From: Diadema antillarum
Taxonomy: Eukaryota
Assembly (NCBI RefSeq): GCF_040938485.1
Contig: NW_027271277.1
Coordinates: 1-64,000, forward strand
Length of the DNA: 64,000 bases
Direction of reading: 5' to 3'
In this document: positions 253 through 59,488 of the stretch, one piece after another
Position numbering within the stretch: the first letter of the stretch is position 1
Layout of the letters: each line of letters begins with the position of its first letter
The notes under the pieces: model-generated
The model's database searches: none
The model's input: only the letters and a program-made list of their open reading frames with translations
What the model was told of the DNA's origin: nothing
Program-made: the position numbers and the translations under genes

Positions 253-1337
253 TACTTTCTATTGTCAAGAGGTAAAAACTTCTTGCCTCCCCTTGATCAT
301 GATAACGTCTGACGGAAAACTTTGGAGGCAGTTTTCTCGAAACACTGATTTCCTAAACCACTCGACATGCGCTAATAAAATCATCTATATCTCTGCAATC
401 AAGTACTTTTATGAATCGTGTTATATTATGAAATTAAAGAAGATGAGTAAGGGAATAATGTCATGTCATTTTCAGAAAATCGTCCTCCCCCGACTTTCAG
501 ATCCTTTTGTTGTACTACAGCAGGTCACATATATTCCAAGTGAAACTAGATCTACAGATGCTAGTAAACTTGGGTGTGGACAAGTTTAGAGAAGTTACAA
601 ATTTGTAATAAATTTAATATGTACCTACGATCAAACTAAAAGCAACAACAAAAAGGCATGCAGATGGAGGAAATCTAGGTGTAAGATATAGATGTGGAAA
701 AATCGACAACTCATTAGAACATAAAAGTACAAAAACCTTGAAATTTGGTGTTGGCCATTACCAATTTTTCCTTCAAATCCAGCTAACAACACTATGGACA
801 GTCTACGACAGGCAGATCTATACTAGCTAGATCTACAATCAACAGCCAAATGCTTCAATTCTTTCTTCTTCTTTTTTTGAGTTGAGTTAATGACACCTAG
901 CTAGCTAGATCTAGACCTCTATAATGGCAATGCCATGGTAAATATTGAATGCAGACATGATGTGCTTGCCCCTTGACTTGGGGAAAATTATCCAAAGAGC
1001 ACATTACAAAATATAAACACTCCGCTCACTCGACCACGCCTGCACGTTTATATCCCTGATGTGGAGTTTGTGCAGTATCTCACCAGATCCAGATCCAGAT
1101 CCTTCTTCGAAATGGTCAGAAAAGTTTCAAGGGATTCTGGCAATCAAATGGTTTAGGGACCATGCTCTGCACATCCCCACCCACACTCACCACACACAGA
1201 GCAGATTGCCAATATGGCAGAGAGAGGGATTTCAAAAGGAGATGCAGGCATGTTTATGACACCCAACATCAGTGAGCACATATGGGACTATTAAATTACA
1301 AAACATTCCCGATGCGAAGGACGGTCGCGATAATTAC

Positions 1338-1455
1338 CTAAAAAGAGCAGTTCCTTCGTTATGGCACGTCCCAAGCCTGTTCCACCTCCGGTAACTACGG
1401 CAACTTTGTTTGAAAACAATCCTGACCGGAAAACACTTCTGCCGGCTTGATTCAT
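1338..1455 (-). CDS. PECR: First coding exon of peroxisomal trans-2-enoyl-CoA reductase (SDR family); gene continues off the left edge
   Basis: MNQAGRSVFRSGLFSNKVAVVTGGGTGLGRAITKELLFL-G has the SDR TGxxxGxG motif and closely resembles the PECR N-terminus ([28 protein letters not shown]). It ends at a phase-1 donor TTA G|GTAATT at 1338/1337. Confidence 0.85.
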
Positions 1456-2564
1456 CTTGTCTGTAATGTGTACGGTTGACCGTACCCCACCGTGAAGAGC
1501 TACCTGTTCTGCAGCTAGCACTAGCTAGCGACGCGACGAGCCCGCGATCCCGATCCGACCCGATAGTTATCCTGAGCTAGCACTGTTTACGTTGTGTGCT
1601 TGGTGTGAGCTGATCGGCGAGACTGACTGACCTAGACACGTACACTGCATCACCTGTACCTCCCTCGCTCGTATCGTAATGGAGGTGGTACCTTGACCCG
1701 ATTCTACGCGGCTGGCACCTATTAGTGCGAGCTTTGTCGGGAGGATTGCACAGAATCTGCCCTTATCTGCGGGTCCATGCGACCTAAATTTCTCCACTTG
1801 ATACATCAATGATTAACTTGACCTGTCTCTGACATATAATATCTGTATAGGCACCCTATATGATGCCCCGGCCATCCCCCTATCAATGACTGTCTCTTTT
1901 TTTCCCCAAACATCAAGGGGGGGGGGGGGGGGGGGAGGTTAACGATCTGTACATAGAATCTGTATCGGCTTAACGGTGACGGTCCTGTAATGTTATAGTA
2001 ACTGACTATTAAAACTGGTTGTGAAAGTCGACATCAATTAGGCCTAAACAGCGTTATATTTCGATTTGTCGAATTCATTTTCATCCATTAAGACGCGTAG
2101 CACTTTAAAACTATATACGTAATGTAGTACACTAACATTGCTATTTCTCCTCGTATAGGTAGTCTACCTACAGACGTTGACATAATGCATTGATCACCAT
2201 TCATTAAGCGATTTGACACATTTTCATCCCCTCCCCCCCCCCCCCACACACACACACACACATACACACACAAATAGGTGTTTGTTTTTTTTTTTTCAAG
2301 ATTCGATCTGGTCTGATAGATGATAATGGTTAATCGCAAAGAAGTATTTATAGAAACACTCAGACTCAATTATAGTAATCAATCGAAAAACAAACACTTA
2401 CTGCTAACGATTAGAATAATAACATGAGTTCGTTATAGGTACATTGACGCAGAGACCTAAATTTGGAAGCATTATTTACCCGAGCGGTTTATTGACTGAT
2501 GTGATAATAATACAGTCACATATTATATACTGTAAAATGCCCGTTTATATTATTTCAAATAGTT

Positions 2565-3095: not shown

Positions 3096-4050
3096 TTTCA
3101 TCCTGCCAAACCAAAAATACAATCTCAAGAAAACTGTTTTCTTCTATTGCTGATAAAAGTAGAATATCGGGAAGTATAGTATAGACAACCGCTCATAAGA
3201 ATCCGACACAATTTTGTGAAAGTGATGGTCATAAAACGTCAGTAAGTGAATCAAGCTTGTGCCCTTAATGTGCGCCACGTAATACGTATCTGCTATCAGG
3301 TGGCAATTAAATTCGTTGTCTATTGACTTCTTGGCTATAAACTGGTGTGTGGAGTGTAAGCTATAATAACATTAGTGTATTCAAGTTTCCACATTAGCTC
3401 TGCTTTAGTTTATTTCACCATTACTCTCCTGATTTTGTTTTTCCTTTTAATCACAGAATCTGCATCTTCCAAGAGAGCTCGCACTTTAAAATCACGCCCC
3501 TCCTCCTCACGCGGGATCCATGAGCTGTGACGTAATACCCATGTGAAACATTGCATGGCTCGCCAACTATAGTTTTAAAAGGTCGATACTACAAAAATGC
3601 ATCAATTAATATGAAATCTGCTATATAGTCACGACTTTTATAATAGTCACGCTTAACCAATCGGATTTCAACCGAACCCCCACTCACAAAAAAAATATGT
3701 ATAAAAAAATATGATAATGATAATAATAATAACAATAATAACAAACGCATGAAAACTGAAATTATCAAACGCGCATACACCCATTCCATTCATGCATCAC
3801 ATACAAACATGTACACCATGGGCACCAACGAAAGTTTACAACTGTCTCTAAAAGTTGTTTGCTCAAAAAAGTGGGAACCAGTCGGAGGGAGGAGAAAGAG
3901 AAAGGAGAGGAAGCGGCAGACTACCATGAAGTATCTTTATTCAATCTGTTTATTCACATTGCCACTAAACCTGATTGTCCATTTTATCCTCATTGCACTC
4001 GGTTTGCGCAAATTGATCGCGTTCTGTGCGTAAAAGTGTAAGCAAGCATT

Positions 4051-4423
4051 AGGGTTCACGTCACGAGACCGACACCCACGAGTCATACAGCTCACAAGTC
4101 ATACAGCCCACGAGTCATACAGCTCACAAGTCATACAGCCCATAAGTTATACAGCTCACGAGTCATACAGCCCATGAGTTCGACACTAAGCCAATTAACA
4201 AGGCCCACGAGACCGACACATTAAGCGCCGTGTTGTATCTGTCGAACTCGTGGGCTGTTTTTACCTAGTGTCGAACTCGTGGGCTGTTTTTACCTAGTGT
4301 CAAACTCATGGGCTTTATTTGCCTAGTGTCGAACTCATGGGCTGTATGACTCGTGAGCTGTATGACTCATGGACCTGTTTTCAATGTCGAACTCGTGGGT
4401 GTCGGTCTAGTGGGATGACCCCT
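4051..4423. mobile_element. Foldback/MITE-like element with 16-bp internal tandem units
   Basis: 33-bp imperfect TIRs (AGGGTTCACGTCACGAGACCGACACCCACGAGT vs reverse complement of 4391-4423). About six 16-bp CYCACRAGTCATACAG units on the left are mirrored on the right. Confidence 0.75.
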
Positions 4424-5112
4424 GTATATTATACATGTATTATTGCAATACTGATATAAAATATCATTTTGAGCAAGGCTTCACTGCTGTTTGCGCTTTT
4501 CCAGCTCATAATCAATAGTATACGGGTGACTATGGAGCAGAAATAAGATCGTATGGTACCTCTACTGCGTCACGCTTATTATAAATGTTTGAAGGTGACC
4601 AGTTTCTATATCGTCCATGAAAACACAGTATAAACAAACAAAAGATGATAATGATATGGACACTGATGTTGTAGATTTTGCAGCCATGACGATGGGAATA
4701 ATATCAAAATGAACTGTTTACTACCAAGCTCATGGTACGCTAACATGAAGGAACATCCGTAATCAAAAAGAAAGACATTTCCATATCAAGCAACTGTAAA
4801 ACATTTAATACAGATGCATCAGAGCCCAGGGTCATGTCGATATTTTGTCAAAATCTCTTCGGTCATGTCGGTATCTCGAATTTAGATTTGGCATGATACG
4901 TAGATTGACAGTGGAATAAAACTTTGTGTAAACAATGATGACAAACGATACCAAATGAGAGAACAATCATTAATGAAAGCAATCGACAAAACAGAGTTTT
5001 GTGTTCTATGATGCAATGCTAAACGAACGAAAATTAGTTAATGACAGATCATTTGCAACACATGCGGGAATGACTGTGATTATTACCCATCCACGTAATT
5101 ACAGTGAGCCCT

Positions 5113-5289
5113 GGGGGGCGTTTCATCAACGAGTTCGTCGGAGTTTTCACCGACAAATTTGCTATCAGCCAATCAGACCAAGGATTTCATTAGCTTTTAA
5201 CAGTTGTCAGTGTAAATCCTTGCGTCTGATTGGCTGATAGCAAATTTGTCAGTGAAAACTCCGACGAACTCGTTGATGAAATGCCCCCC
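5113..5289. mobile_element. Near-perfect palindromic MITE, PIF/Harbinger-like
   Basis: GGGGGGCGTTTCATCAACGAGTTCGTCGGAG... arms mirror each other over about 70 bp and carry two inverted AGCCAATCAG boxes; flanks are CCT / AGG. Confidence 0.8.
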
Positions 5290-6547: not shown

Positions 6548-7807
6548 TCATCTCCATGGGACCCATGTTTTCAATGATGATATTTGAGAAGTATTTTGTC
6601 CTTTGCGGCAACTCTGATACCACTTGGTTTCAGACAAGGGTTTTCTCTGTAACCTCCCAACCTTAACGTCCCGGATGTGAGGCAATAATCTGCACAGTGA
6701 CTCCCTTCGAAAGGGGGGATATGCCTTCTTGATTGATCCCAAGCTCCTCCACTTAAAGTACTTGAGGTACAATCCGTCATTCTTGGCAACTACCTTAAGG
6801 TAATCGGCGAGCGCTTTGGGTGAAGCAAAGTCAGCAGCATGTATGTAGGAGCCTGGTGGAGCGAATTTGAGGAAGCTGACTTTTCTGGCGCCGTATACTA
6901 CAGGAATGGTGTAATGAAGGAGGGCAGTTTGCCAGAACTGGTTCGTGATGTACTCTTGGCATTCTGCGTCTTCAAAGGCAATGAAAAACTTGTACTGACC
7001 CATTAGCATTCCACATTGTTCTGAATCCATGGGAAGACAAGTGAGATTGGTACAAGGGCCGTATCGGTCGATATGAATGTGTTTGGAGAGCTCGTTCAAG
7101 TATGCGTCTCGAGGCCAATATGTGTCCGTCCCACAGTTATTACCCATCCACGCCATTATTTTACGTTTTCCTGAATGATTTGGAATGACCACATTGGTGT
7201 CCATTGGTTCATCTGGAATGTAATACCCAAACGGTGTCGTCAGCTCAGATGCAGACATATATGTCCAAGAGAGATGAACGGGAAAGCTTCCAAGCTTGGG
7301 ATTTAGTTTTATGGCTTTAAGTGGTGCTAACATCGACATGAAAACCCAGAGCTGGTTGGGTTTATGTAGGGAATCTGATTTCAGACCGTCTATCCTTCCT
7401 CGCAACGATGAAGGAGACAGACCAAAGATAACTACATCCCTGTGTTTGAGGTCAGTCTCATTGGCAGATACACTAACTTGGAGAGAGCATTGTACTTGCT
7501 TTGGCTCCGCATCACATTCAACCTTGATATCACGTCTATGCCCGGCAACTTTCTTCAATTGTGACGTCAGACTAACAAACTCAGACTGTCGACTCAGCAA
7601 AATTGGTTTAGCGAAGATGAGGACGTCATAGACGCACTCCGGAAGTGATCCGTCCGGAGCTGACAAGGCCACTCTGTCTTCCAGGGCTCCTTGGAACTTG
7701 ATGACGTAGGGTGGATCGATGAGGTTGATGACTTGGAAGACGGCTACGACGGTGACGATTCCCAAGAAGAAGGCGTAGGGATAAAGACATGACCTGGACA
7801 CCCATGC
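6548..7807 (-). CDS. GT10 alpha-1,3/4-fucosyltransferase-like paralogue A, main coding exon (catalytic residues substituted)
   Basis: 419-codon exon after acceptor CACAG| at 7808. It has an N-terminal TM helix, AWMGNNC..R, YKFFIAFEDAECQEYITNQFW, IPVVYG, PPGSYIHAADF and YFKWR, all recognisable GT10 motifs. Confidence 0.92.
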   Translation of the reverse strand, partial: AWVSRSCLYPYAFFLGIVTVVAVFQVINLIDPPYVIKFQGALEDRVALSAPDGSLPECVYDVLIFAKPILLSRQSEFVSLTSQLKKVAGHRRDIKVECDAEPKQVQCSLQVSVSANETDLKHRDVVIFGLSPSSLRGRIDGLKSDSLHKPNQLWVFMSMLAPLKAIKLNPKLGSFPVHLSWTYMSASELTTPFGYYIPDEPMDTNVVIPNHSGKRKIMAWMGNNCGTDTYWPRDAYLNELSKHIHIDRYGPCTNLTCLPMDSEQCGMLMGQYKFFIAFEDAECQEYITNQFWQTALLHYTIPVVYGARKVSFLKFAPPGSYIHAADFASPKALADYLKVVAKNDGLYLKYFKWRSLGSIKKAYPPFRRESLCRLLPHIRDVKVGRLQRKPLSETKWYQSCRKGQNTSQISSLKTWVPWR

Positions 7808-8355
7808 CTGTGTGCAGGAAACAGAAAAGTGCGTCTATCATATTGCTAAGAACTGTTCAGGATAACAAGTGATACAATCGAATAGTAATCTATCGTTCAG
7901 GTAATGAGTACAGCGAAATGTAAGCTCAAAACAGTCCTATAGGTCATACTTAGTCTGTCAGGTAGGCTGGAGGCGAAATCTTTCTCGTCGGAACCAATGG
8001 ATTTTAATAATATAATTGTAGGGAATCCATGCCCAGATTGAAAGTTTATGCCCGGTCAATAACCTATTAATACCTCTACTTCTTGCACTGTCTTGTGGCC
8101 ATCATTCTTAACATTTCTCGTGGTCTACTGACAGTCCATTCTCTACCCCATTTACTAATTCACGTCCTTAGATTTTTCTCCGACAAGCATCATTTTGTCA
8201 CGTAGTCAACCCTTTCCCCCATCACCTAAATAATGCACTTTCACCATAAGCAGTGATATCATGTAACCACTCTATGTACAGTTCTTTCATGCTTTGTCTC
8301 CACATTAGCCGTGCCACGCATCCTTGTTGAATCAGAAGTCGTAAAATAGAAACAC

Positions 8356-9516
8356 AACTAGAAATGTCGCTGTGGCGACTGGAATGCCTCCGCCATAATG
8401 CATGGTTCTCCACTAGGTCTACGTATAGAATGACTTGACAATGCGTGATGGCAGTTTGACATAACTGGGAAAATATTAAAATGACATGTTTGTCCCAAAT
8501 GTGTTGATTGTTCACTTTCCTTGAACCAGGTTTAATTTGATGACTGGCTATTGTCTATCAAAAAGAGCAGGTATTGGGGTTTTGAAGAATTTTACTTGAC
8601 TTTTGATCCTTTATGAATTGATTTATTTCCAAGGTATGGAGAAAAAGTGTAATTTCAGTATTACATAGTAAAATTTTAGCATTTTAACATTGCATTTGAC
8701 CCTTGACTTTTCACCCTTATAACCCTAAATTCCCATGAGAATCACTGTCAGGCAGTACATGCATACATATGTACAAAGCTTCATAATGATAATGATACCT
8801 TGAGCGATTTTCGAGATATGGAGGAAGAAAATGAAATTTAGCATGTTCACTTGACCTTTAACCTTTTGGCGAAAACCTTTCCAAGCAAATCTCTATTGGG
8901 TAATATGTGTATACACTAAGTTTCAAGAAAAATCTTGCAGGCATTGCATGGATAGGCCTATGAGGGAAATAGTGAAATTTTGAGGAGTTGACCTTAACCT
9001 TTGACCCTTCACCCGGTGACCCCAAAATTCCCAAGATAATCTGTGCCAGTCAGTACATGTATAATTATGTACCAAGTTCCATGAAGACACCGTGAACCAC
9101 TTCCGATATATATGGAGAAAAAAGTGAAATTTTAACATAATTATTCACTTGACCTTTGACCTCTGACCTTTGACCTCATAGCTCGAAACTCTCTCTAGAG
9201 AATTATTGGGTAATACATGTATACACTAAGTTTCAAGAAAATACCTCCGGCATTACATAGATATGGGGGAAATAGTGAAATTTTGAGCAATTGACCTTGA
9301 CCCTTCGACCTTTGATCTTGATCATGTGCACCTTTAAGTTGATAGGCACAACTTTTCCTACTCATACACATACATGCCATGTTTCATTAGGATACCTCAA
9401 ACGGTTTTTTAGTTACCCTGCCCACAAGATTGATTACGGACGGACGGACGGACGGAAGGACGGACAACCCGAAAACATAATGCCTCCGGCGACACTTCGT
9501 GGCGGAGGCATAAAAA
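8356..9516 (-). mobile_element. Helentron-derived non-autonomous element (DINE-1/HINE-like) in the intron of paralogue A
   Basis: On the minus strand: 5' subTIR TTTTATGCCTCCGCC with adjacent inverted copy CGGAGGCAT, (CCGT)n microsatellite, internal TTGACCTTTGACC-rich repeats, 3' subTIR (8384-8394), hairpin GTCGC-TGTG-GCGAC (8366-8379), and a CTAG|TT end. Confidence 0.75.
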
Positions 9517-9557
9517 CATTTACGACATATTATTTACCAATAAGTAATTTAGCTTAC

Positions 9558-9599
9558 CACCATTCTGTAATGACATTGAATAGCTGACAACATGACCAT
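9558..9599 (-). CDS. Predicted first coding exon of fucosyltransferase paralogue A (MVMLSAIQCHYRMV)
   Basis: gccATGG start, 14 codons, phase-0 donor GTG|GTAAGC. It joins in frame to AWVSRSCLYP at 7807. Confidence 0.6.
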
Positions 9600-28596: not shown

Positions 28597-28941
28597 GCAG
28601 CTCGTACAGAGCTATAACAAGGCATATCCGCACACAATATTGAATAGCGCCTTCTGGTTACCTAATTTGCATGTTCTATTGAACATTCTTCATATGCAAG
28701 TGTATCCTACAAATACTCACTGAGTCAATATAATTGATCATAACTTTGTCGTTTTTATATATATCTTCCTTTTATGTCAAGCATAATTAGAATATGCCAG
28801 ACAATATAAAAGTAACATTGTCAATGTTTGCAGACCTCTTGTCTTTGACCTAGCAAACTTAGAGTTTTTATTGGTTTAAAGTGGATAACAGATTGCATGA
28901 CTAAGGCAAATGATGAATATTATTTCTCTCTTGATTTGCAG

Positions 28942-30231
28942 TGTCGCCGTTTCTCCGCGACCTACGCTCTTGTTGCGTTCATAGTCTCTATCACAGTCTG
29001 CTTTGTACTCCTGCAACACGGCATAACCCCGTACTCGGTGAAGCAGACCTACTCGTTCGGTGGAACCTTCCTCAGAAACCACCAGGATCTTGATGAGATC
29101 GATGACCTTAGTCTTGGGTTGCCTAATCGCAACGGGGAACGGACTGGAGAGACCAAGCGAATCTACATCCACAGCAAACTAGAGGCCATCCTGACATGGC
29201 GCGAGCTGGAGAATCTCGTAGATTGTGTCCGGGTGGACGGAAGCAAGACCGAAGCCAAACCTTGCCCTGTCCAGTGTCCGAGCGGGGACCGACTGGAAAT
29301 CACTATGGACAGCGACCTGGACAAAGCCAGAGATAAGGACGCTGTGATAGTCGGTTTGTCGCCCTACACTATGAATCGCCCTCTGGAGGCCGTTGTAAAC
29401 TATGAACCGCCACCAGGACAGCTTGTGGTCTTTTACAGTATGGAGAACGTAATGCGAATGCATCACTGGCAAAGCAGGCTAGGGAAGTTCAAGTTTCACA
29501 TAGACCTGACATATGGTTATTATTCTAATATCACGGTGCCGTACGGTTACTACCAGCCAGTCACTGGAAAAGTGCCCGACATCAAACCTAAAAACAGACT
29601 GGCAGGTAAAACCAAACTCATTGCATGGATGGCTAGTAATTGTAAGGAGACTTTCTGGCCAAGGAACGAGTTTGTTGCCGAACTGCAGCGGCACATTGAC
29701 GTCGACACTTACGGTCGTTGCGGGCAGCTACAATGCCAACCGCGCCTTTCTCTTGACTGCAGTGAGATGCTTTCAAGTTATAAATTCTATCTGGCACTGG
29801 AGAACTCGGAATGTAACGACTACCTGTCGGAGAAGATTTGGAATTCGTCCCTTGAAAATGACGTCATTCCCGTTGTCTATGGGCCAAGCAAAGCTGACTA
29901 CGAAAAGCTCGCACCCCCGAATTCGTTCATTCACATCAGCGACTTCGATACTGTGGAAGAACTCGCGAAGTACATTAAGCGCGTTGCAGAAGACGAGAAA
30001 CTGTACAATAGTTATTTCTATTGGAGGGAACAAGGCAAGGTTGTCCAGGTGTATCCGAGGCTGCAACTAAATTACTTCTGCAAACTGCTACCGTACATGA
30101 AAAATGTCCCAAACACTATGATTAAACTGGAAGATTCTGGTTGGTACAATTCATGCAGAAACAAACTCCAGCATGGTATTCCAATAAACCTCACCACACT
30201 GCACCAGTTTGACAACTGGAAACCTTGGTAG
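28942..30231 (+). CDS. GT10 alpha-1,3/4-fucosyltransferase paralogue C, main coding exon
   Basis: Acceptor TTGATTTGCAG| then CRRFSAT. It has a TM helix, FYSMEN, AWMASNC..R, YKFYLALENSECNDYLSEKIW, IPVVYG, PPNSFIHISDF and YFYWR, and is strongly similar to paralogue B. Confidence 0.95.
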   Translation, partial: CRRFSATYALVAFIVSITVCFVLLQHGITPYSVKQTYSFGGTFLRNHQDLDEIDDLSLGLPNRNGERTGETKRIYIHSKLEAILTWRELENLVDCVRVDGSKTEAKPCPVQCPSGDRLEITMDSDLDKARDKDAVIVGLSPYTMNRPLEAVVNYEPPPGQLVVFYSMENVMRMHHWQSRLGKFKFHIDLTYGYYSNITVPYGYYQPVTGKVPDIKPKNRLAGKTKLIAWMASNCKETFWPRNEFVAELQRHIDVDTYGRCGQLQCQPRLSLDCSEMLSSYKFYLALENSECNDYLSEKIWNSSLENDVIPVVYGPSKADYEKLAPPNSFIHISDFDTVEELAKYIKRVAEDEKLYNSYFYWREQGKVVQVYPRLQLNYFCKLLPYMKNVPNTMIKLEDSGWYNSCRNKLQHGIPINLTTLHQFDNWKPW

Positions 30232-34618: not shown

Positions 34619-34778
34619 NNNNNNNNNNNNNNNNNNNNNNNNNNNNNNNNNNNNNNNNNNNNNNNNNNNNNNNNNNNNNNNNNNNNNNNNNNNNNNNNNN
34701 NNNNNNNNNNNNNNNNNNNNNNNNNNNNNNNNNNNNNNNNNNNNNNNNNNNNNNNNNNNNNNNNNNNNNNNNNNNNNN
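34619..34778. other. Assembly gap (160 N)
   Basis: Run of N preceded by TATAT. Confidence 0.99.
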
Positions 34779-53728: not shown

Positions 53729-55800
53729 TTTTTTTTTTGTTTGATAGATACTTTATTTTCTGCAAATCAATATACATTGTACATAAACTGAATAATCGTG
53801 AACATGGGAAATATACAAAGTATATTTGAAACAGAGTCGTTTGACTTGCATAAACAATGATATAAAAGGAATTTAATGATATTACAGTATGCATGTCTAT
53901 GCAGCTGGGATTACAATAACAATATTATATTTAGGAAATGATAATGCAGAGGGCCGCCATTGTAAGCATTGCTTGAAAAGATGGCCGGCCCGAGGAAAAG
54001 GTAGGTAGGTAAATTGGTAAACAATACAAATTCTGCTGCGAGGATAGCAGGGGAAAATAAACTCTGATGTGTGAAGGTGGTGAATGTGCGTGCGAGTGCT
54101 TGAGAGTGCACAGGGGCAGATAGGCTGGGATTTGGAATGATAAAATTGGTTTGCTGGAAGAGGGAATGACTTACGATGTTGCTACTATCGGGAGACCAAC
54201 ATAAGTCATATAAATTATTCGGGCTTAATTCGTATTTGAAGTATACTGTGATAAAATATGCTTCTTTAAGTTTGCTTTGAATGAAAACAAGGAGGCACAC
54301 TGTTTCAACTCTTCAGGAAGAGTGTTCCATGTATCCGGACCGTGATGTCTAATCGACTTTTGAGCAAGTAAAAGCTTTGGATTACTTAAATGAAAATCAT
54401 GGGAACGACGGGTAGGGTATGAGTGAATATAATCATTAGTAACTAGGGCATTATGGAAAAATGGTAATAAATTTCGAATGTGTTTGTACATAAATATAGC
54501 AGTTAAATATGAATGTATATCATGGGCCTTTAGGGTTTTTAGGCGATAAAATATGGGATCAGTGTGAGCCAAAAAATTTGAATGTGGTATGTGCATATAC
54601 GAAGAGCCTTTTTCTGAAGAAGAAAAATTGTGTTCAATTTGGTTTTGCTACAGTTGCCCCATACAATATTACAGTACATTACATATGGTAGAAATAAGGT
54701 GTTGTATAACATCATTAAAGTTTGATCATTAATTAAGTATTTTATTCTCCTTAACACACCAGTTGCCTTAGATATTGCTGTTATAATATTCTGGACATGA
54801 GTATTCCAAGTTAGATTGTTATCTAGGGTCACTCCTAGGAACTTGGTTGAATGTTTCTCAGCAATGTTTATATCATCAATAGAAATACTTTGAGGAAGGG
54901 TGGGTTGAGATTGAAGCGTATGAAAATGTATAAAACATGTTTTATCAATATTCAATGAAAGCTTATTACTTCTAAACCATTTCGAAATATTACTTAATTC
55001 CATGTTAAATGTATCCACCAATGTTACAATATCCTTGTGGGAATAAAAAACATTGGTGTCGTCTGCAAATAAAATGAAGTTTAAACGAGGAGAGGAATTA
55101 ATGATATCATTAATATAAATCAAAAAAAGTAGGGGCCCGAGGATAGATCCCTGAGGGACACCACATGACACGTTCAAATGGAACGAATGACTGGATTTAA
55201 ATGCAACATATTGTTTTCGATGACTTAGATAACTTCTAAACCATGACAAAGTAATCCCTCTCACGCCATAATTATGTAATTTTTCAAATAAAATGTCATG
55301 ATCAATAGTGTCGAATGCTTTACTAAGATCCATAAAAACTCCAATTATGTGCTCCTTTTTAATAAGCGCATCAATAATATTATCAACAGATTTAATTATA
55401 GCATAATCGGTAGAAAATCCTTTCCTAAAACCAAACTGATTCACATTTAATATTTCATTTTCAATCATAAACGAGGAGAGACGCTTATAAACTAATTTTT
55501 CTAAAATTTTCGATATTGCAGGTAACAATGAGATGGGTCTATAATTTTTCACCAATGATGGATCTTCTCTTTTATAAATGGGGATAACTTTGGCGATTTT
55601 AAAAGAGTCTGGAAACTCACCGTTAAGTAAGGATAAATTAAATATATGGGTGAGAGGGGCTGCTAAGGGGTAGAATTTGTAAATCTGTTGCATTTTTTTT
55701 AAACAGTTGATAATTTTATCATTCCGGTGCCTATAATTATTGTGTACACTTTTTATTCTATCATGGCATGACTAATTTCAAGGGATTATTGAATTTTTGG
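53729..55800 (-). mobile_element. 5'-truncated LINE (CR1/L2 group, Crack/Daphne-like) with RT domain, one frameshift, 3' UTR and A-rich tail
   Basis: ORF 55693-54539 has NYRPISLL, QFGFRKG, DLSKAFDTIDH, GVPQGSILGPLLF and FADDT; it continues in another frame (54596-54225). AATAAA at 53757-53752 is followed by CAAACAAAAAAAAAA. Confidence 0.92.
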
Positions 55801-57557: not shown

Positions 57558-58006
57558 ACACAAACCTGCGTTCATATAGGATGGCTTGTTGATTTGACCT
57601 CTTTTATTGACAGATCCCATCCCTTCAGTAAGACTTTCACTGTTCCTTCATGTGACACTCAAAAGTGAATTTTGTCATTGTTGTCTTTAAAGTTCGCGTT
57701 CTCAGCCATGTATAACATTTGTCAACGTTATTAGGTATCAATGGAAAGAGGAAGAGTTCTTATTTCCTCAAAATCAACATTGCACTCTCCATAGCTGACA
57801 ATTCTGACATGGTAGCCTTATTAAGTTGGATTACCTTTTTATATGCTCTGTATAATATACAAATCACTCACACTCACAATTATTATATAGATAGCCATAT
57901 CATTGAAAATAGCATTGTGCTTTAAAGCTAATGCTGTCTTTGCTTTTTATATCATGGCTCTGTTTTGTTGTGTTTTTTCCTTCTTGTAATAATCTGCAGG
58001 GAAAAA

Positions 58007-59488
58007 ATGGAAAGCACGGCTTTGTTGAATTCTTCATCAGGCATGTCAGCGGCCGGCAGTTTGGATGAGGCAAAGGACATAAATATCGCCCTCTATAGGC
58101 TTCGACTGGTCCTCGGGGTACTGCTGGCCGTAGCGATTGTTGCCGTCAACTCAGTTGTCATAGCAACGTATTGGACTGTAGCTAATGTCAGGAGCAAGAT
58201 ATCTAACGCTGTCATTGCTAATATATCCCATGCTGATATTTTGGTGGGAATAGTCAATGTACCATGCTTAGTTTATGTTGAATTTTCTCGGGGCATGTGG
58301 TGGCAGAGTGCGTCTCTGTGCAAGTTTGTCCTCACAGTAAGCTATCTCGACACAATGATTACCATCGTATCTAGCATTATACTGTTATCTATTCAACGAC
58401 TCAGTCTATCGAGAAGCCCCCGATACAGAAATTTTGTCACTACTAAACATATTTCAGTAATCCTTCCATGCTGCTGGGTATTGTTTGCAGCATTGTACAC
58501 ATTTGTCTTTTTTGGCATTCCCAAATTTACCGCTACCAATGTCATAGAAAACATTAATCAGTGTATCATAGAATACCTCTTTTTTCCTGCCTGGGTCTAC
58601 TTCATGATAAGTTTGGAGGTTTTTCTGCCCTTCACGCTCCTTGCCTTTCTTGCTGTTGATCTGCTTTGTGTAGTCAGGCGAAATTTAACATCAGTGTCGC
58701 CAGAGAACAACAATGCACAGGCCGCCCGTCCGTCCACAAATCGAGTGACAGGCACTTCCAGCAATTGGAACTCGCTATCCACTCAATCGTCCCGTGTGAC
58801 TGGATCTTTAGGACCGGTACGGACTCCTCACCCCGTATCTGGTCATCAAGGTTCTACCTCTCGCCAGTTTCTAGAAGCCATATCAGAGCCAGTGAGCATC
58901 CTGTGCCAAGCAGCACCAGTGCCCCCAGGACCAATGCCCCCAGGACCAGTGCCCCCAGGACCAGTGCCCCCAAGACCAATGCCCCCAGGACCAGTGCCCC
59001 CAGGACCAGTGCCCCCAGGACCAATGCCCCCAGGACCAGTGCCCCCAAGACTAATGCCCCCAGGACCAGTACCCGCAGCACCAATGCCCCCAAGATTAAT
59101 GCCCCCAGGAACAGTGCCCCCAGGACCAGTACCCGCAGCACCAATGCCCCCAGGACCAGTGCCCGCAGGACCTGCGTCCCCAGCACCAGTGCCCCCAGGA
59201 CCAGTGCCCCCATCGCCAGTGCCCCCAATACGTTCCAGAAGATATCCAATGCGGGCTACAATCAAACTTCTCCTCTATGTTGCTGTTGTCGTTGTGTTCT
59301 GGCTACCCTTCGCTATCGCGTCTGTGCTTGTTACGATTTGTCCTACATGCATATCACATGATGTCATCAAACAAACGCATTGGGTTTTAAACTGTAATTC
59401 TCTTGTTAATCCATTTCTCTATGCCACAACGCATCCTAATTTCCGTCAGGGTCTGAAAAAGGTTCTGCGTCTGCCGAGAAGGTCATAA
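58007..59488 (+). CDS. Class A (rhodopsin-like) orphan GPCR, aminergic/histamine-H3-like scaffold, with proline-rich repeat ICL3; 493 aa from this ATG
   Basis: Seven hydrophobic segments with N1.50 (VAVN), D2.50 (HADILVG), C3.25, W4.50, LEVFLPF in TM5, FWLP in TM6 and NSLVNPFLY in TM7, then helix 8 (HPNFRQGL). An acceptor CTGCAG| lies at 57999, so the ORF-track start at 57965 is probably intronic. Confidence 0.93.
58919..59230 (+). repeat. 15-bp coding minisatellite (about 21 units) encoding [VM]PPGP
   Basis: (G/A)TGCCCCCAGGACCA tandem units with variants such as [10 protein letters not shown] and VPAAP. Confidence 0.95.

Follow-up and report, generated by a model that had tools for sequence, protein, structure and literature searches.

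A candidate pseudoenzyme among the GT10 fucosyltransferases of sea urchins is maintained by purifying selection

The window analysed here consists of positions 1 to 64,000 (forward strand) of contig NW_027271277.1 of the sea urchin Diadema antillarum (NCBI RefSeq assembly GCF_040938485.1) and contains genes A, B and C of glycosyltransferase family 10 (GT10). Gene A is best explained as encoding a selectively maintained GT10 pseudoenzyme, a Golgi-type membrane protein unable to use the base-assisted inverting mechanism of its family, a reading to which we assign a probability of about 0.6. The general-base glutamate and two or three contacts to the donor or transition state are gone from the protein. 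According to this reading, loss of the base would be a single event in the echinoid stem lineage, later than the divergence from sea stars and sea cucumbers but earlier than that between Diadema and the camarodont urchins, with stepwise erosion of the remaining active-site residues afterwards; elsewhere the protein has stayed under strong purifying selection. It would work via its fold, for instance by assisting or regulating active Golgi fucosyltransferases (such as its head-to-head neighbour B) without catalysis of its own, or by binding a glycan or nucleotide.

Gene A lies on the minus strand and is made up of two exons and a single intron:

10399-10470, minus strand: exon 1, 24 codons, encoding the cytosolic N-terminus
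7808-10398, minus strand: the single intron, with canonical GT..AG splice sites
6548-7807, minus strand: exon 2, 419 codons plus the stop codon at 6548-6550
7718-7789, minus strand: transmembrane anchor, roughly residues 31-54, with DPPYVIK after it; conservation among A orthologues is unusually high

Exon 2 supplies the transmembrane anchor and stem as well as the two Rossmann-like halves of the GT10 domain. Exon 1 was located by tblastn with the NCBI protein XP_071505495.1, and the splice sites read TTG/GTCAGT at the donor after exon 1 and cacacag/GCATGG at the acceptor (7807). The Lytechinus pictus orthologue likewise has two exons, with an exon 1 peptide similar to that of Diadema, and the intron position is conserved. 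The original prediction, made from the letters of this DNA alone, described an uninterrupted open reading frame (ORF), which is confirmed in the ORF list (6548-7801, minus strand). Its estimate of about 433 residues for the product is replaced by the 443 of the NCBI model (XP_071505495.1), and the upstream limit that it set near 9599 moves to the exon at 10399-10470. A first exon near 9599 was rejected, as that position falls inside the intron beside high-copy repeats; the NCBI model, the splice sites and the Lytechinus-like N-terminus favour 10399-10470. By exon 1, an additional in-frame ATG is present at 10473-10471 (minus strand). The intron carries very high-copy repeats at 8254-9541, with a summed word depth of 10^4-10^5 in contigs of a related sequencing run and many internal joints, and these are probably short interspersed or miniature elements.

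Gene A encodes a type II membrane protein whose GT10 (α1,3/4-fucosyltransferase) GT-B fold is intact. It matches Pfam PF00852 (Glyco_transf_10, the C-terminal GT10 domain) with 156 bits (E = 1e-45; cut-off 23.9). The N-terminal GT10 domain, PF17039, scores 19 bits in Diadema A against a cut-off of 28.7, and is assigned to the camarodont A orthologues in precomputed tables. The partial database entry XP_071496245.1 is 100% identical to the protein of the ORF, and XP_071505495.1, encoded on a second D. antillarum contig, is one residue apart from it. Database names for the protein are ‘FUT3-like’ or ‘fucosyltransferase 6’.

The active-site residues of A were identified through a HMMER alignment to human FUT9 (PDB 8d0o), which is free of ambiguity around the motifs and with which an alignment of 163 sequences concurs. 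The equivalent residues of Helicobacter pylori FucT (HpFucT) and Arabidopsis FUT11 (AtFUT11) are given where available, followed by the two paralogues in the window:

7328-7330, minus strand: Leu184 (codon TTA), replacing the catalytic base, FUT9 Glu137 = HpFucT Glu95 = AtFUT11 Glu158
7139-7141, minus strand: Asn247, replacing FUT9 Ser194
7109-7111, minus strand: Arg257, equivalent to FUT9 Arg202 (a diphosphate contact according to PMC12717137); retained in all A orthologues
6968-6970, minus strand: Asp304 (codon GAC), replacing FUT9 Asn246 (HpFucT Asn240) of the FEN motif
6938-6943, minus strand: Asn313 and Gln314 (codons AAC CAG), replacing FUT9 Glu255 and Lys256 (HpFucT Glu249 and Lys250)
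18140-19468, plus strand: main exon of paralogue B, head-to-head with A; looks active, with its E/S/N/R/E/N/E/K set complete
28897-30231, plus strand: paralogue C, sister to B in the tree; looks active

The motifs that the original prediction quoted for the three copies, and its codon positions, are all present as stated. Copy A reads FMSMLAP, MGNNC, FEDAEC and EYITNQ, whereas B and C read FYSMEN, MASNC, ENSEC and DYL[TS]EK, with the E/N/E/K residues intact. The residue equivalence on which it relied also stands, both alignments placing Leu, Asp, Asn and Gln of A at Glu137, Asn246, Glu255 and Lys256 of FUT9. A review (PMC12717137) gives Glu137 of FUT9 as the likely base, with Arg202 and Lys256 stabilising the diphosphate and Asn195 and Asn246 the transition state. 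Replacement of the equivalent glutamate in Arabidopsis FUT11 (E158A) leaves the enzyme wholly inactive (PMC12929593), and Tyr246, Glu249 and Lys250 are cited as donor contacts of H. pylori FucT (PMC11468063). Among these features of a competent enzyme, the general-base glutamate, the diphosphate-stabilising lysine and the donor/transition-state asparagine are absent from A; the equivalents of Arg202 and Asn195 are present, the latter as Asn248, which is retained in all A orthologues. Judged by these residues, A would be catalytically inactive. At position 6955, Glu309 (the glutamate of EYIT) is changed to glutamine in one of three related sequencing runs (X1), which looks like a polymorphism beside the former donor site.

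The fold around these substitutions is preserved. An AlphaFold2 model of A, built from a 122-sequence alignment, has a mean predicted local distance difference test (pLDDT) score of 89.5 and a predicted template modelling (pTM) score of 0.80 (from the five orthologues alone, the pLDDT was 34.5 and the model unusable). Residues 8-54 of the model form an N-terminal helix that takes in the hydrophobic anchor, and the model has two Rossmann-like halves. Foldseek matches it best to FUT9 among PDB entries (8d0o and 8d0w; E = 1e-19, template modelling score 0.75-0.77), then to AtFUT11, mango FUT13 and HpFucT, so that the structure-model check places A in the GT-B fold of FUT9. An ESM Atlas model of the A protein also matches GT10 clusters. 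A thus shares Pfam family, GT-B fold and type II topology with FUT9 (PDB 8D0O), HpFucT (2NZW) and AtFUT11 (9S6A), and compared with active GT10 enzymes it keeps the core cysteines, YKF, Arg202, Asn195, Glu245, VVYG and PPxSxIH..DF.

Orthologues of A are present in Strongylocentrotus purpuratus (XP_784963.2, two isoforms), Lytechinus variegatus and L. pictus, and near-identical variants with intact ORFs, including two that are Strongylocentrotus-like, were recovered from Logan contigs. Diadema and camarodont A proteins are 50-55% identical. In S. purpuratus, L. variegatus and the second Diadema contig, A lies between a head-to-head B-type GT10 gene and a downstream short-chain dehydrogenase (SDR) gene, and the S. 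purpuratus orthologue of B occupies the equivalent position. In the window, the SDR gene was recognised by tblastx to those of S. purpuratus and L. variegatus:

1336-1470, minus strand: first coding exon of the SDR gene downstream of A

This shared arrangement of the head-to-head B-type GT10 and the SDR gene supports the orthology of gene A across the urchins. All A orthologues have ORFs that lack the Glu base, Asn246 and Lys256, the camarodont motifs being FMTM[Q/L]SP, MG[N/D]NC, FESSEC and EYITE[S/P]. Whether orthologues keep the E/N/E/K set was one of the checks proposed with the original prediction; none does so, with Glu, Asn and Lys missing from S. purpuratus, the two Strongylocentrotus-like Logan variants, L. 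variegatus and L. pictus alike.

The rarity of these losses was assessed by an exhaustive profile search of 1.84 billion representatives, which returned 9103 GT10 relatives; the best 150 of these were aligned with controls to give the 163 rows mentioned above. The echinoderm relatives of A came from this search, as a word-index protein search returned only the orthologue clusters and distant arthropod matches. Across the family the four residues replaced in A (Glu137, Asn246, Glu255 and Lys256) are 89-100% conserved, with glutamate at the base site in 149 of the 163 rows and lysine at the Lys256 site in 152. A set of 47 positions was taken as conserved, on the criterion of at least 85% conservation across 102 GT10 proteins that look active. 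Every A orthologue retains 37 of these, which take in all core cysteines as well as YKF, Tyr and Thr in EYIT, P/V/G in VVYG, PP.S.I..DF and the Trp in FxWR. Six of the 47 are lost in every A orthologue, namely E137, S194, the glycine after the second core cysteine, the tyrosine after YKF, N246 and K256, and three of the four documented catalytic positions (E137, N246 and K256) fall among these six (hypergeometric P = 0.005). The original prediction had spoken of losses targeted to catalytic residues in an otherwise preserved fold, and these counts bear it out.

Gene A is maintained rather than decaying. Pairwise ratios of nonsynonymous to synonymous substitution rates (dN/dS), calculated by the Nei-Gojobori method (NG86), are 0.09 between Strongylocentrotus and Lytechinus (dS about 1), 0.06 between L. 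pictus and L. variegatus, and 0.11-0.21 among the Strongylocentrotus sequences. By region of the A protein, the ratio is below 0.22 everywhere and falls to 0.03 in the donor-side domain. No dN/dS is given for Diadema against the camarodonts, where synonymous sites have reached saturation (pS 0.86-0.89). Within the Diadema lineage, contigs from three related sequencing runs, about 4% divergent from the window, are genomic, since they include intron flanks. Those of one closely related run differ from exon 2 by 54 substitutions and no insertions or deletions (indels), with indels in the non-coding flanks. The 25 of these 54 differences that are listed comprise 18 synonymous and 7 nonsynonymous changes and give a dN/dS of about 0.10 (binomial P = 7e-8 against neutrality), a value that rests on this partial list.

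These results bear directly on the view of A as a pseudogene, young or in slow decay, that is not expressed and whose ORF is open by chance. Echinoderm genomes carry about 79 GT10 genes each (PMC11468063), among which dead copies are to be expected; A has evolved about 1.5 times faster than B by branch lengths since the split of Diadema from the camarodonts (rates being compared by amino-acid identity and branch lengths); and a sequencing-run search for gene A returned no RNA run, only three runs of one study. Logan contigs encoding the protein clusters P0002 and P0017 had been considered as transcripts, and were rejected as genomic on account of an intron acceptor upstream of the ORF. Against decay stand the intact syntenic ORFs of D. 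antillarum, S. purpuratus, L. variegatus and L. pictus together with the Strongylocentrotus-like Logan variants, the conserved intron position, the lack of any indel in exon 2 of the related run, the saturation of synonymous sites between Diadema and the camarodonts, and dN/dS of 0.06-0.21 (P < 1e-7 against neutrality). We regard decay as very improbable.

Misassembly as the source of the substitutions is refuted, and so is a private allele of the one animal sequenced. The second D. antillarum contig (L014) has identical catalytic-site codons in A, with one amino acid different elsewhere, and the losses are common to orthologues in other genera. In the related run D304, N313 and Q314 are unchanged among the listed differences, a list that does not extend to L184. 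Low dN/dS, the absence of exon 2 indels, the shared losses and the second contig together exclude decay to a pseudogene, misassembly and a private allele. The expectations of a dN/dS far below 1 (0.06-0.21 in camarodonts, about 0.10 for the partial Diadema list) and of residues found beyond a single assembly were thus correct, and the phrase ‘maintained rather than decaying’ in the original prediction is upheld by the shared losses, intact ORFs and purifying selection.

Beyond the orthologue cluster, which scores 783 bits in the profile search, the next-best relatives of A score 356 bits and belong to Apostichopus (sea cucumber), Acanthaster (sea star), Amphiura (brittle star) and crinoids. 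In the maximum-likelihood tree, the echinoid A clade (100/100) lies within an echinoderm subfamily (99/96) whose other members mostly have the catalytic residues, and B and C lie in a separate subfamily with Asterias sequences (100/98). Since A belongs to one echinoderm subfamily and B and C to another, the duplication that separated them predates the split of the echinoderm classes. The echinoid A clade sits on a long stem branch (0.75). A crinoid pair (two proteins) groups with it weakly (88/89) through the joining of long branches, and was not relied on.

In Acanthaster planci, an A-type gene lies head-to-head with a B-type gene and is thus the positional orthologue of A; it retains E/S/N/R/E/N/E/K:

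3881-5194 (minus strand) and 11326-12951 (plus strand) of A. planci DF978530.1: head-to-head GT10 pair, B-type and A-type

The catalytic residues are likewise retained in the Apostichopus and Amphiura proteins and in P0025 and P0028. Around the A-type gene of Apostichopus no conserved synteny was found, and its orthology is taken from the tree alone. Both A. planci XP_022088567.1 (P0027) and Apostichopus japonicus XP_071826567.1 (P0024 cluster) belong to A's subfamily and, unlike A, look catalytically competent. The loss is echinoid-specific, because the Acanthaster positional orthologue and the closest relatives in other classes keep the residues. The head-to-head A-type/B-type arrangement is itself conserved from sea stars to sea urchins and may point to a common regulatory region.

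Among echinoids the sampling covers Diadema and camarodonts. The codon at the base site is TTA (Leu) in Diadema and Lytechinus and CAG (Gln) in Strongylocentrotus, and the simplest reading of these sequences is a single loss of the base before the Diadema/camarodont split, which is of the order of 200-270 million years old. The other sites differ between lineages. That of Asn246 is Asp (GAC) in Diadema and Ser (AGT) in camarodonts; that of Glu255 is Asn in Diadema only, with Glu retained in camarodonts; and that of Lys256 is Gln in Diadema and Ser or Pro in camarodonts. This pattern looks like the stepwise erosion of an active site that no longer mattered, in a protein that still did.

Other GT10 clusters in the motif table are without parts of the same catalytic set. 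P0056 (D. antillarum XP_071494584.1 and D. setosum XP_072180079.1), P0154 (Holothuria leucospilota KAJ8028907.1), P0060 and P0096 (both ENA proteins) have no Glu base and no equivalents of Asn246 and Lys256, and most also lack Glu255. In the crinoid proteins P0032 (Anneissia) and P0043 (Antedon) the Glu base is retained and other donor contacts are lost. At least three of the four named GT10 representatives with such losses are echinoderm, which suggests that active sites have been lost recurrently and independently in the echinoderm GT10 expansion. P0056 is a second pseudoenzyme candidate in Diadema.

Several points weigh against a purely non-catalytic A and give some room to the view that it is still a glycosyltransferase with changed chemistry, whether base-free or substrate-assisted, using an acidic acceptor as base, or acting on another nucleotide-sugar donor or another acceptor. 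No A orthologue has lost Arg202, Asn195, Glu245, YKF or the Tyr of EYIT, and the most constrained region is the donor-side domain (dN/dS 0.03), which would also fit nucleotide-sugar binding or even transfer; A may still bind GDP or GDP-fucose. A base-free inverting fucosyltransferase exists in POFUT1 (GT65, an inverting GT-B enzyme), which works through the donor β-phosphate and an Asn relay, so that a missing carboxylate base alone is no proof of inactivity (PMC12717137). FUT10 and FUT11, of the same family as A, proved to have unexpected protein acceptors. To these points must be added, from the selection analysis, the partial list of differences behind the Diadema estimate and the run search without RNA. 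The proposed role as partner or regulator is likewise suggested only by analogy.

New catalytic residues would, however, be expected to be fixed, but the replaced sites vary (Leu/Gln, Asp/Ser and Gln/Ser/Pro). The diphosphate-stabilising lysine has gone along with the base, and the AtFUT11 E158A mutant is fully inactive (PMC12929593). POFUT1 differs from A on the same grounds, in that its Asn relay is fixed and an Arg serves the leaving group, whereas A has no diphosphate Lys either and varies at its replaced sites. Changed chemistry is accordingly a minority reading, to which we give roughly one chance in four, and a maintained pseudoenzyme remains the preferred explanation. For the partner role of the pseudoenzyme there are circumstantial pointers in the head-to-head linkage with B and in the conserved transmembrane segment. 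Over the first 30 aligned residues, the anchor region of Diadema and S. purpuratus is 67% identical in A and 30% in B, and a well-conserved anchor fits an interaction within the membrane. The sea cucumber orthologue also shows weak similarity in the anchor segment, which suggests that conservation of the anchor is a trait of the subfamily.

Pseudoenzymes derived from glycosyltransferases are already known. Cosmc (C1GALT1C1) is a glycosyltransferase fold in a non-catalytic role with its active relative C1GALT1, its fold and family being different from those of A. IRX9 (GT43; PMC4132061), again different in fold and family, is a glycosyltransferase-derived non-catalytic chaperone or scaffold that stands beside an active relative. 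A partner or regulator role for A would resemble that of IRX9 and that of rabbit Sec1 (GT11), an inactive, intact and tandemly linked α1,2-fucosyltransferase paralogue that is a dominant negative of Fut1 (PMC4398370). Sec1, from another CAZy family, occurs only in leporids and undergoes homogenisation by gene conversion; A, in contrast, is 33% identical to B and C and conserved across distant urchin orders. Full-text literature searches found no GT10 pseudoenzyme and no account of this urchin gene.

More tentatively, and with the balance of probability against the proposal as a whole, urchins may have kept, probably for well over 200 million years, a dead GT10 that serves the active enzyme of the head-to-head gene as a non-catalytic subunit or regulator, perhaps in the synthesis of the fucose-rich glycans or sulfated fucans of echinoderms. 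A would then be the first GT10 pseudoenzyme described and one of several independent losses in echinoderms. Glycosyltransferase-derived pseudoenzymes such as Cosmc, IRX9 and rabbit Sec1 govern the products of active enzymes, and the urchin gene offers a natural experiment, with active-looking orthologues in sea stars and sea cucumbers, a strongly constrained, probably dead version in urchins and active-looking paralogues adjacent to it. What a fucosyltransferase fold does after transfer ceases is thus directly testable in a tractable developmental model. In an expansion of about 79 GT10 genes per genome, automatic names such as those given to A overstate function.

Within D. antillarum, about 2% of residues differ between B (18140-19468) and its counterpart on the second contig (L014 351-1676), compared with 1 of 419 for A. 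The two contigs look like haplotypes, and A is more constrained than B within the species.

The remainder of the window contains the following features:

23399-23539 and 34619-34778: runs of N (141 and 160 bases)
40152-40787: tandem repeat region with long repetitive ORFs on both strands, in units such as RRVFSACQHVVSEKASLLGMSC; no Pfam match
54539-55693, minus strand: reverse-transcriptase ORF of a retrotransposon without long terminal repeats (non-LTR; RVT_1, 138 bits)
54225-54596: additional ORF after the reverse-transcriptase ORF
57965-59488, plus strand: intronless ORF of a rhodopsin-family G-protein-coupled receptor (Pfam 7tm_1, 101 bits)

In the receptor ORF (57965-59488), [VM]PPGP repeats in a long run make up the third intracellular loop.

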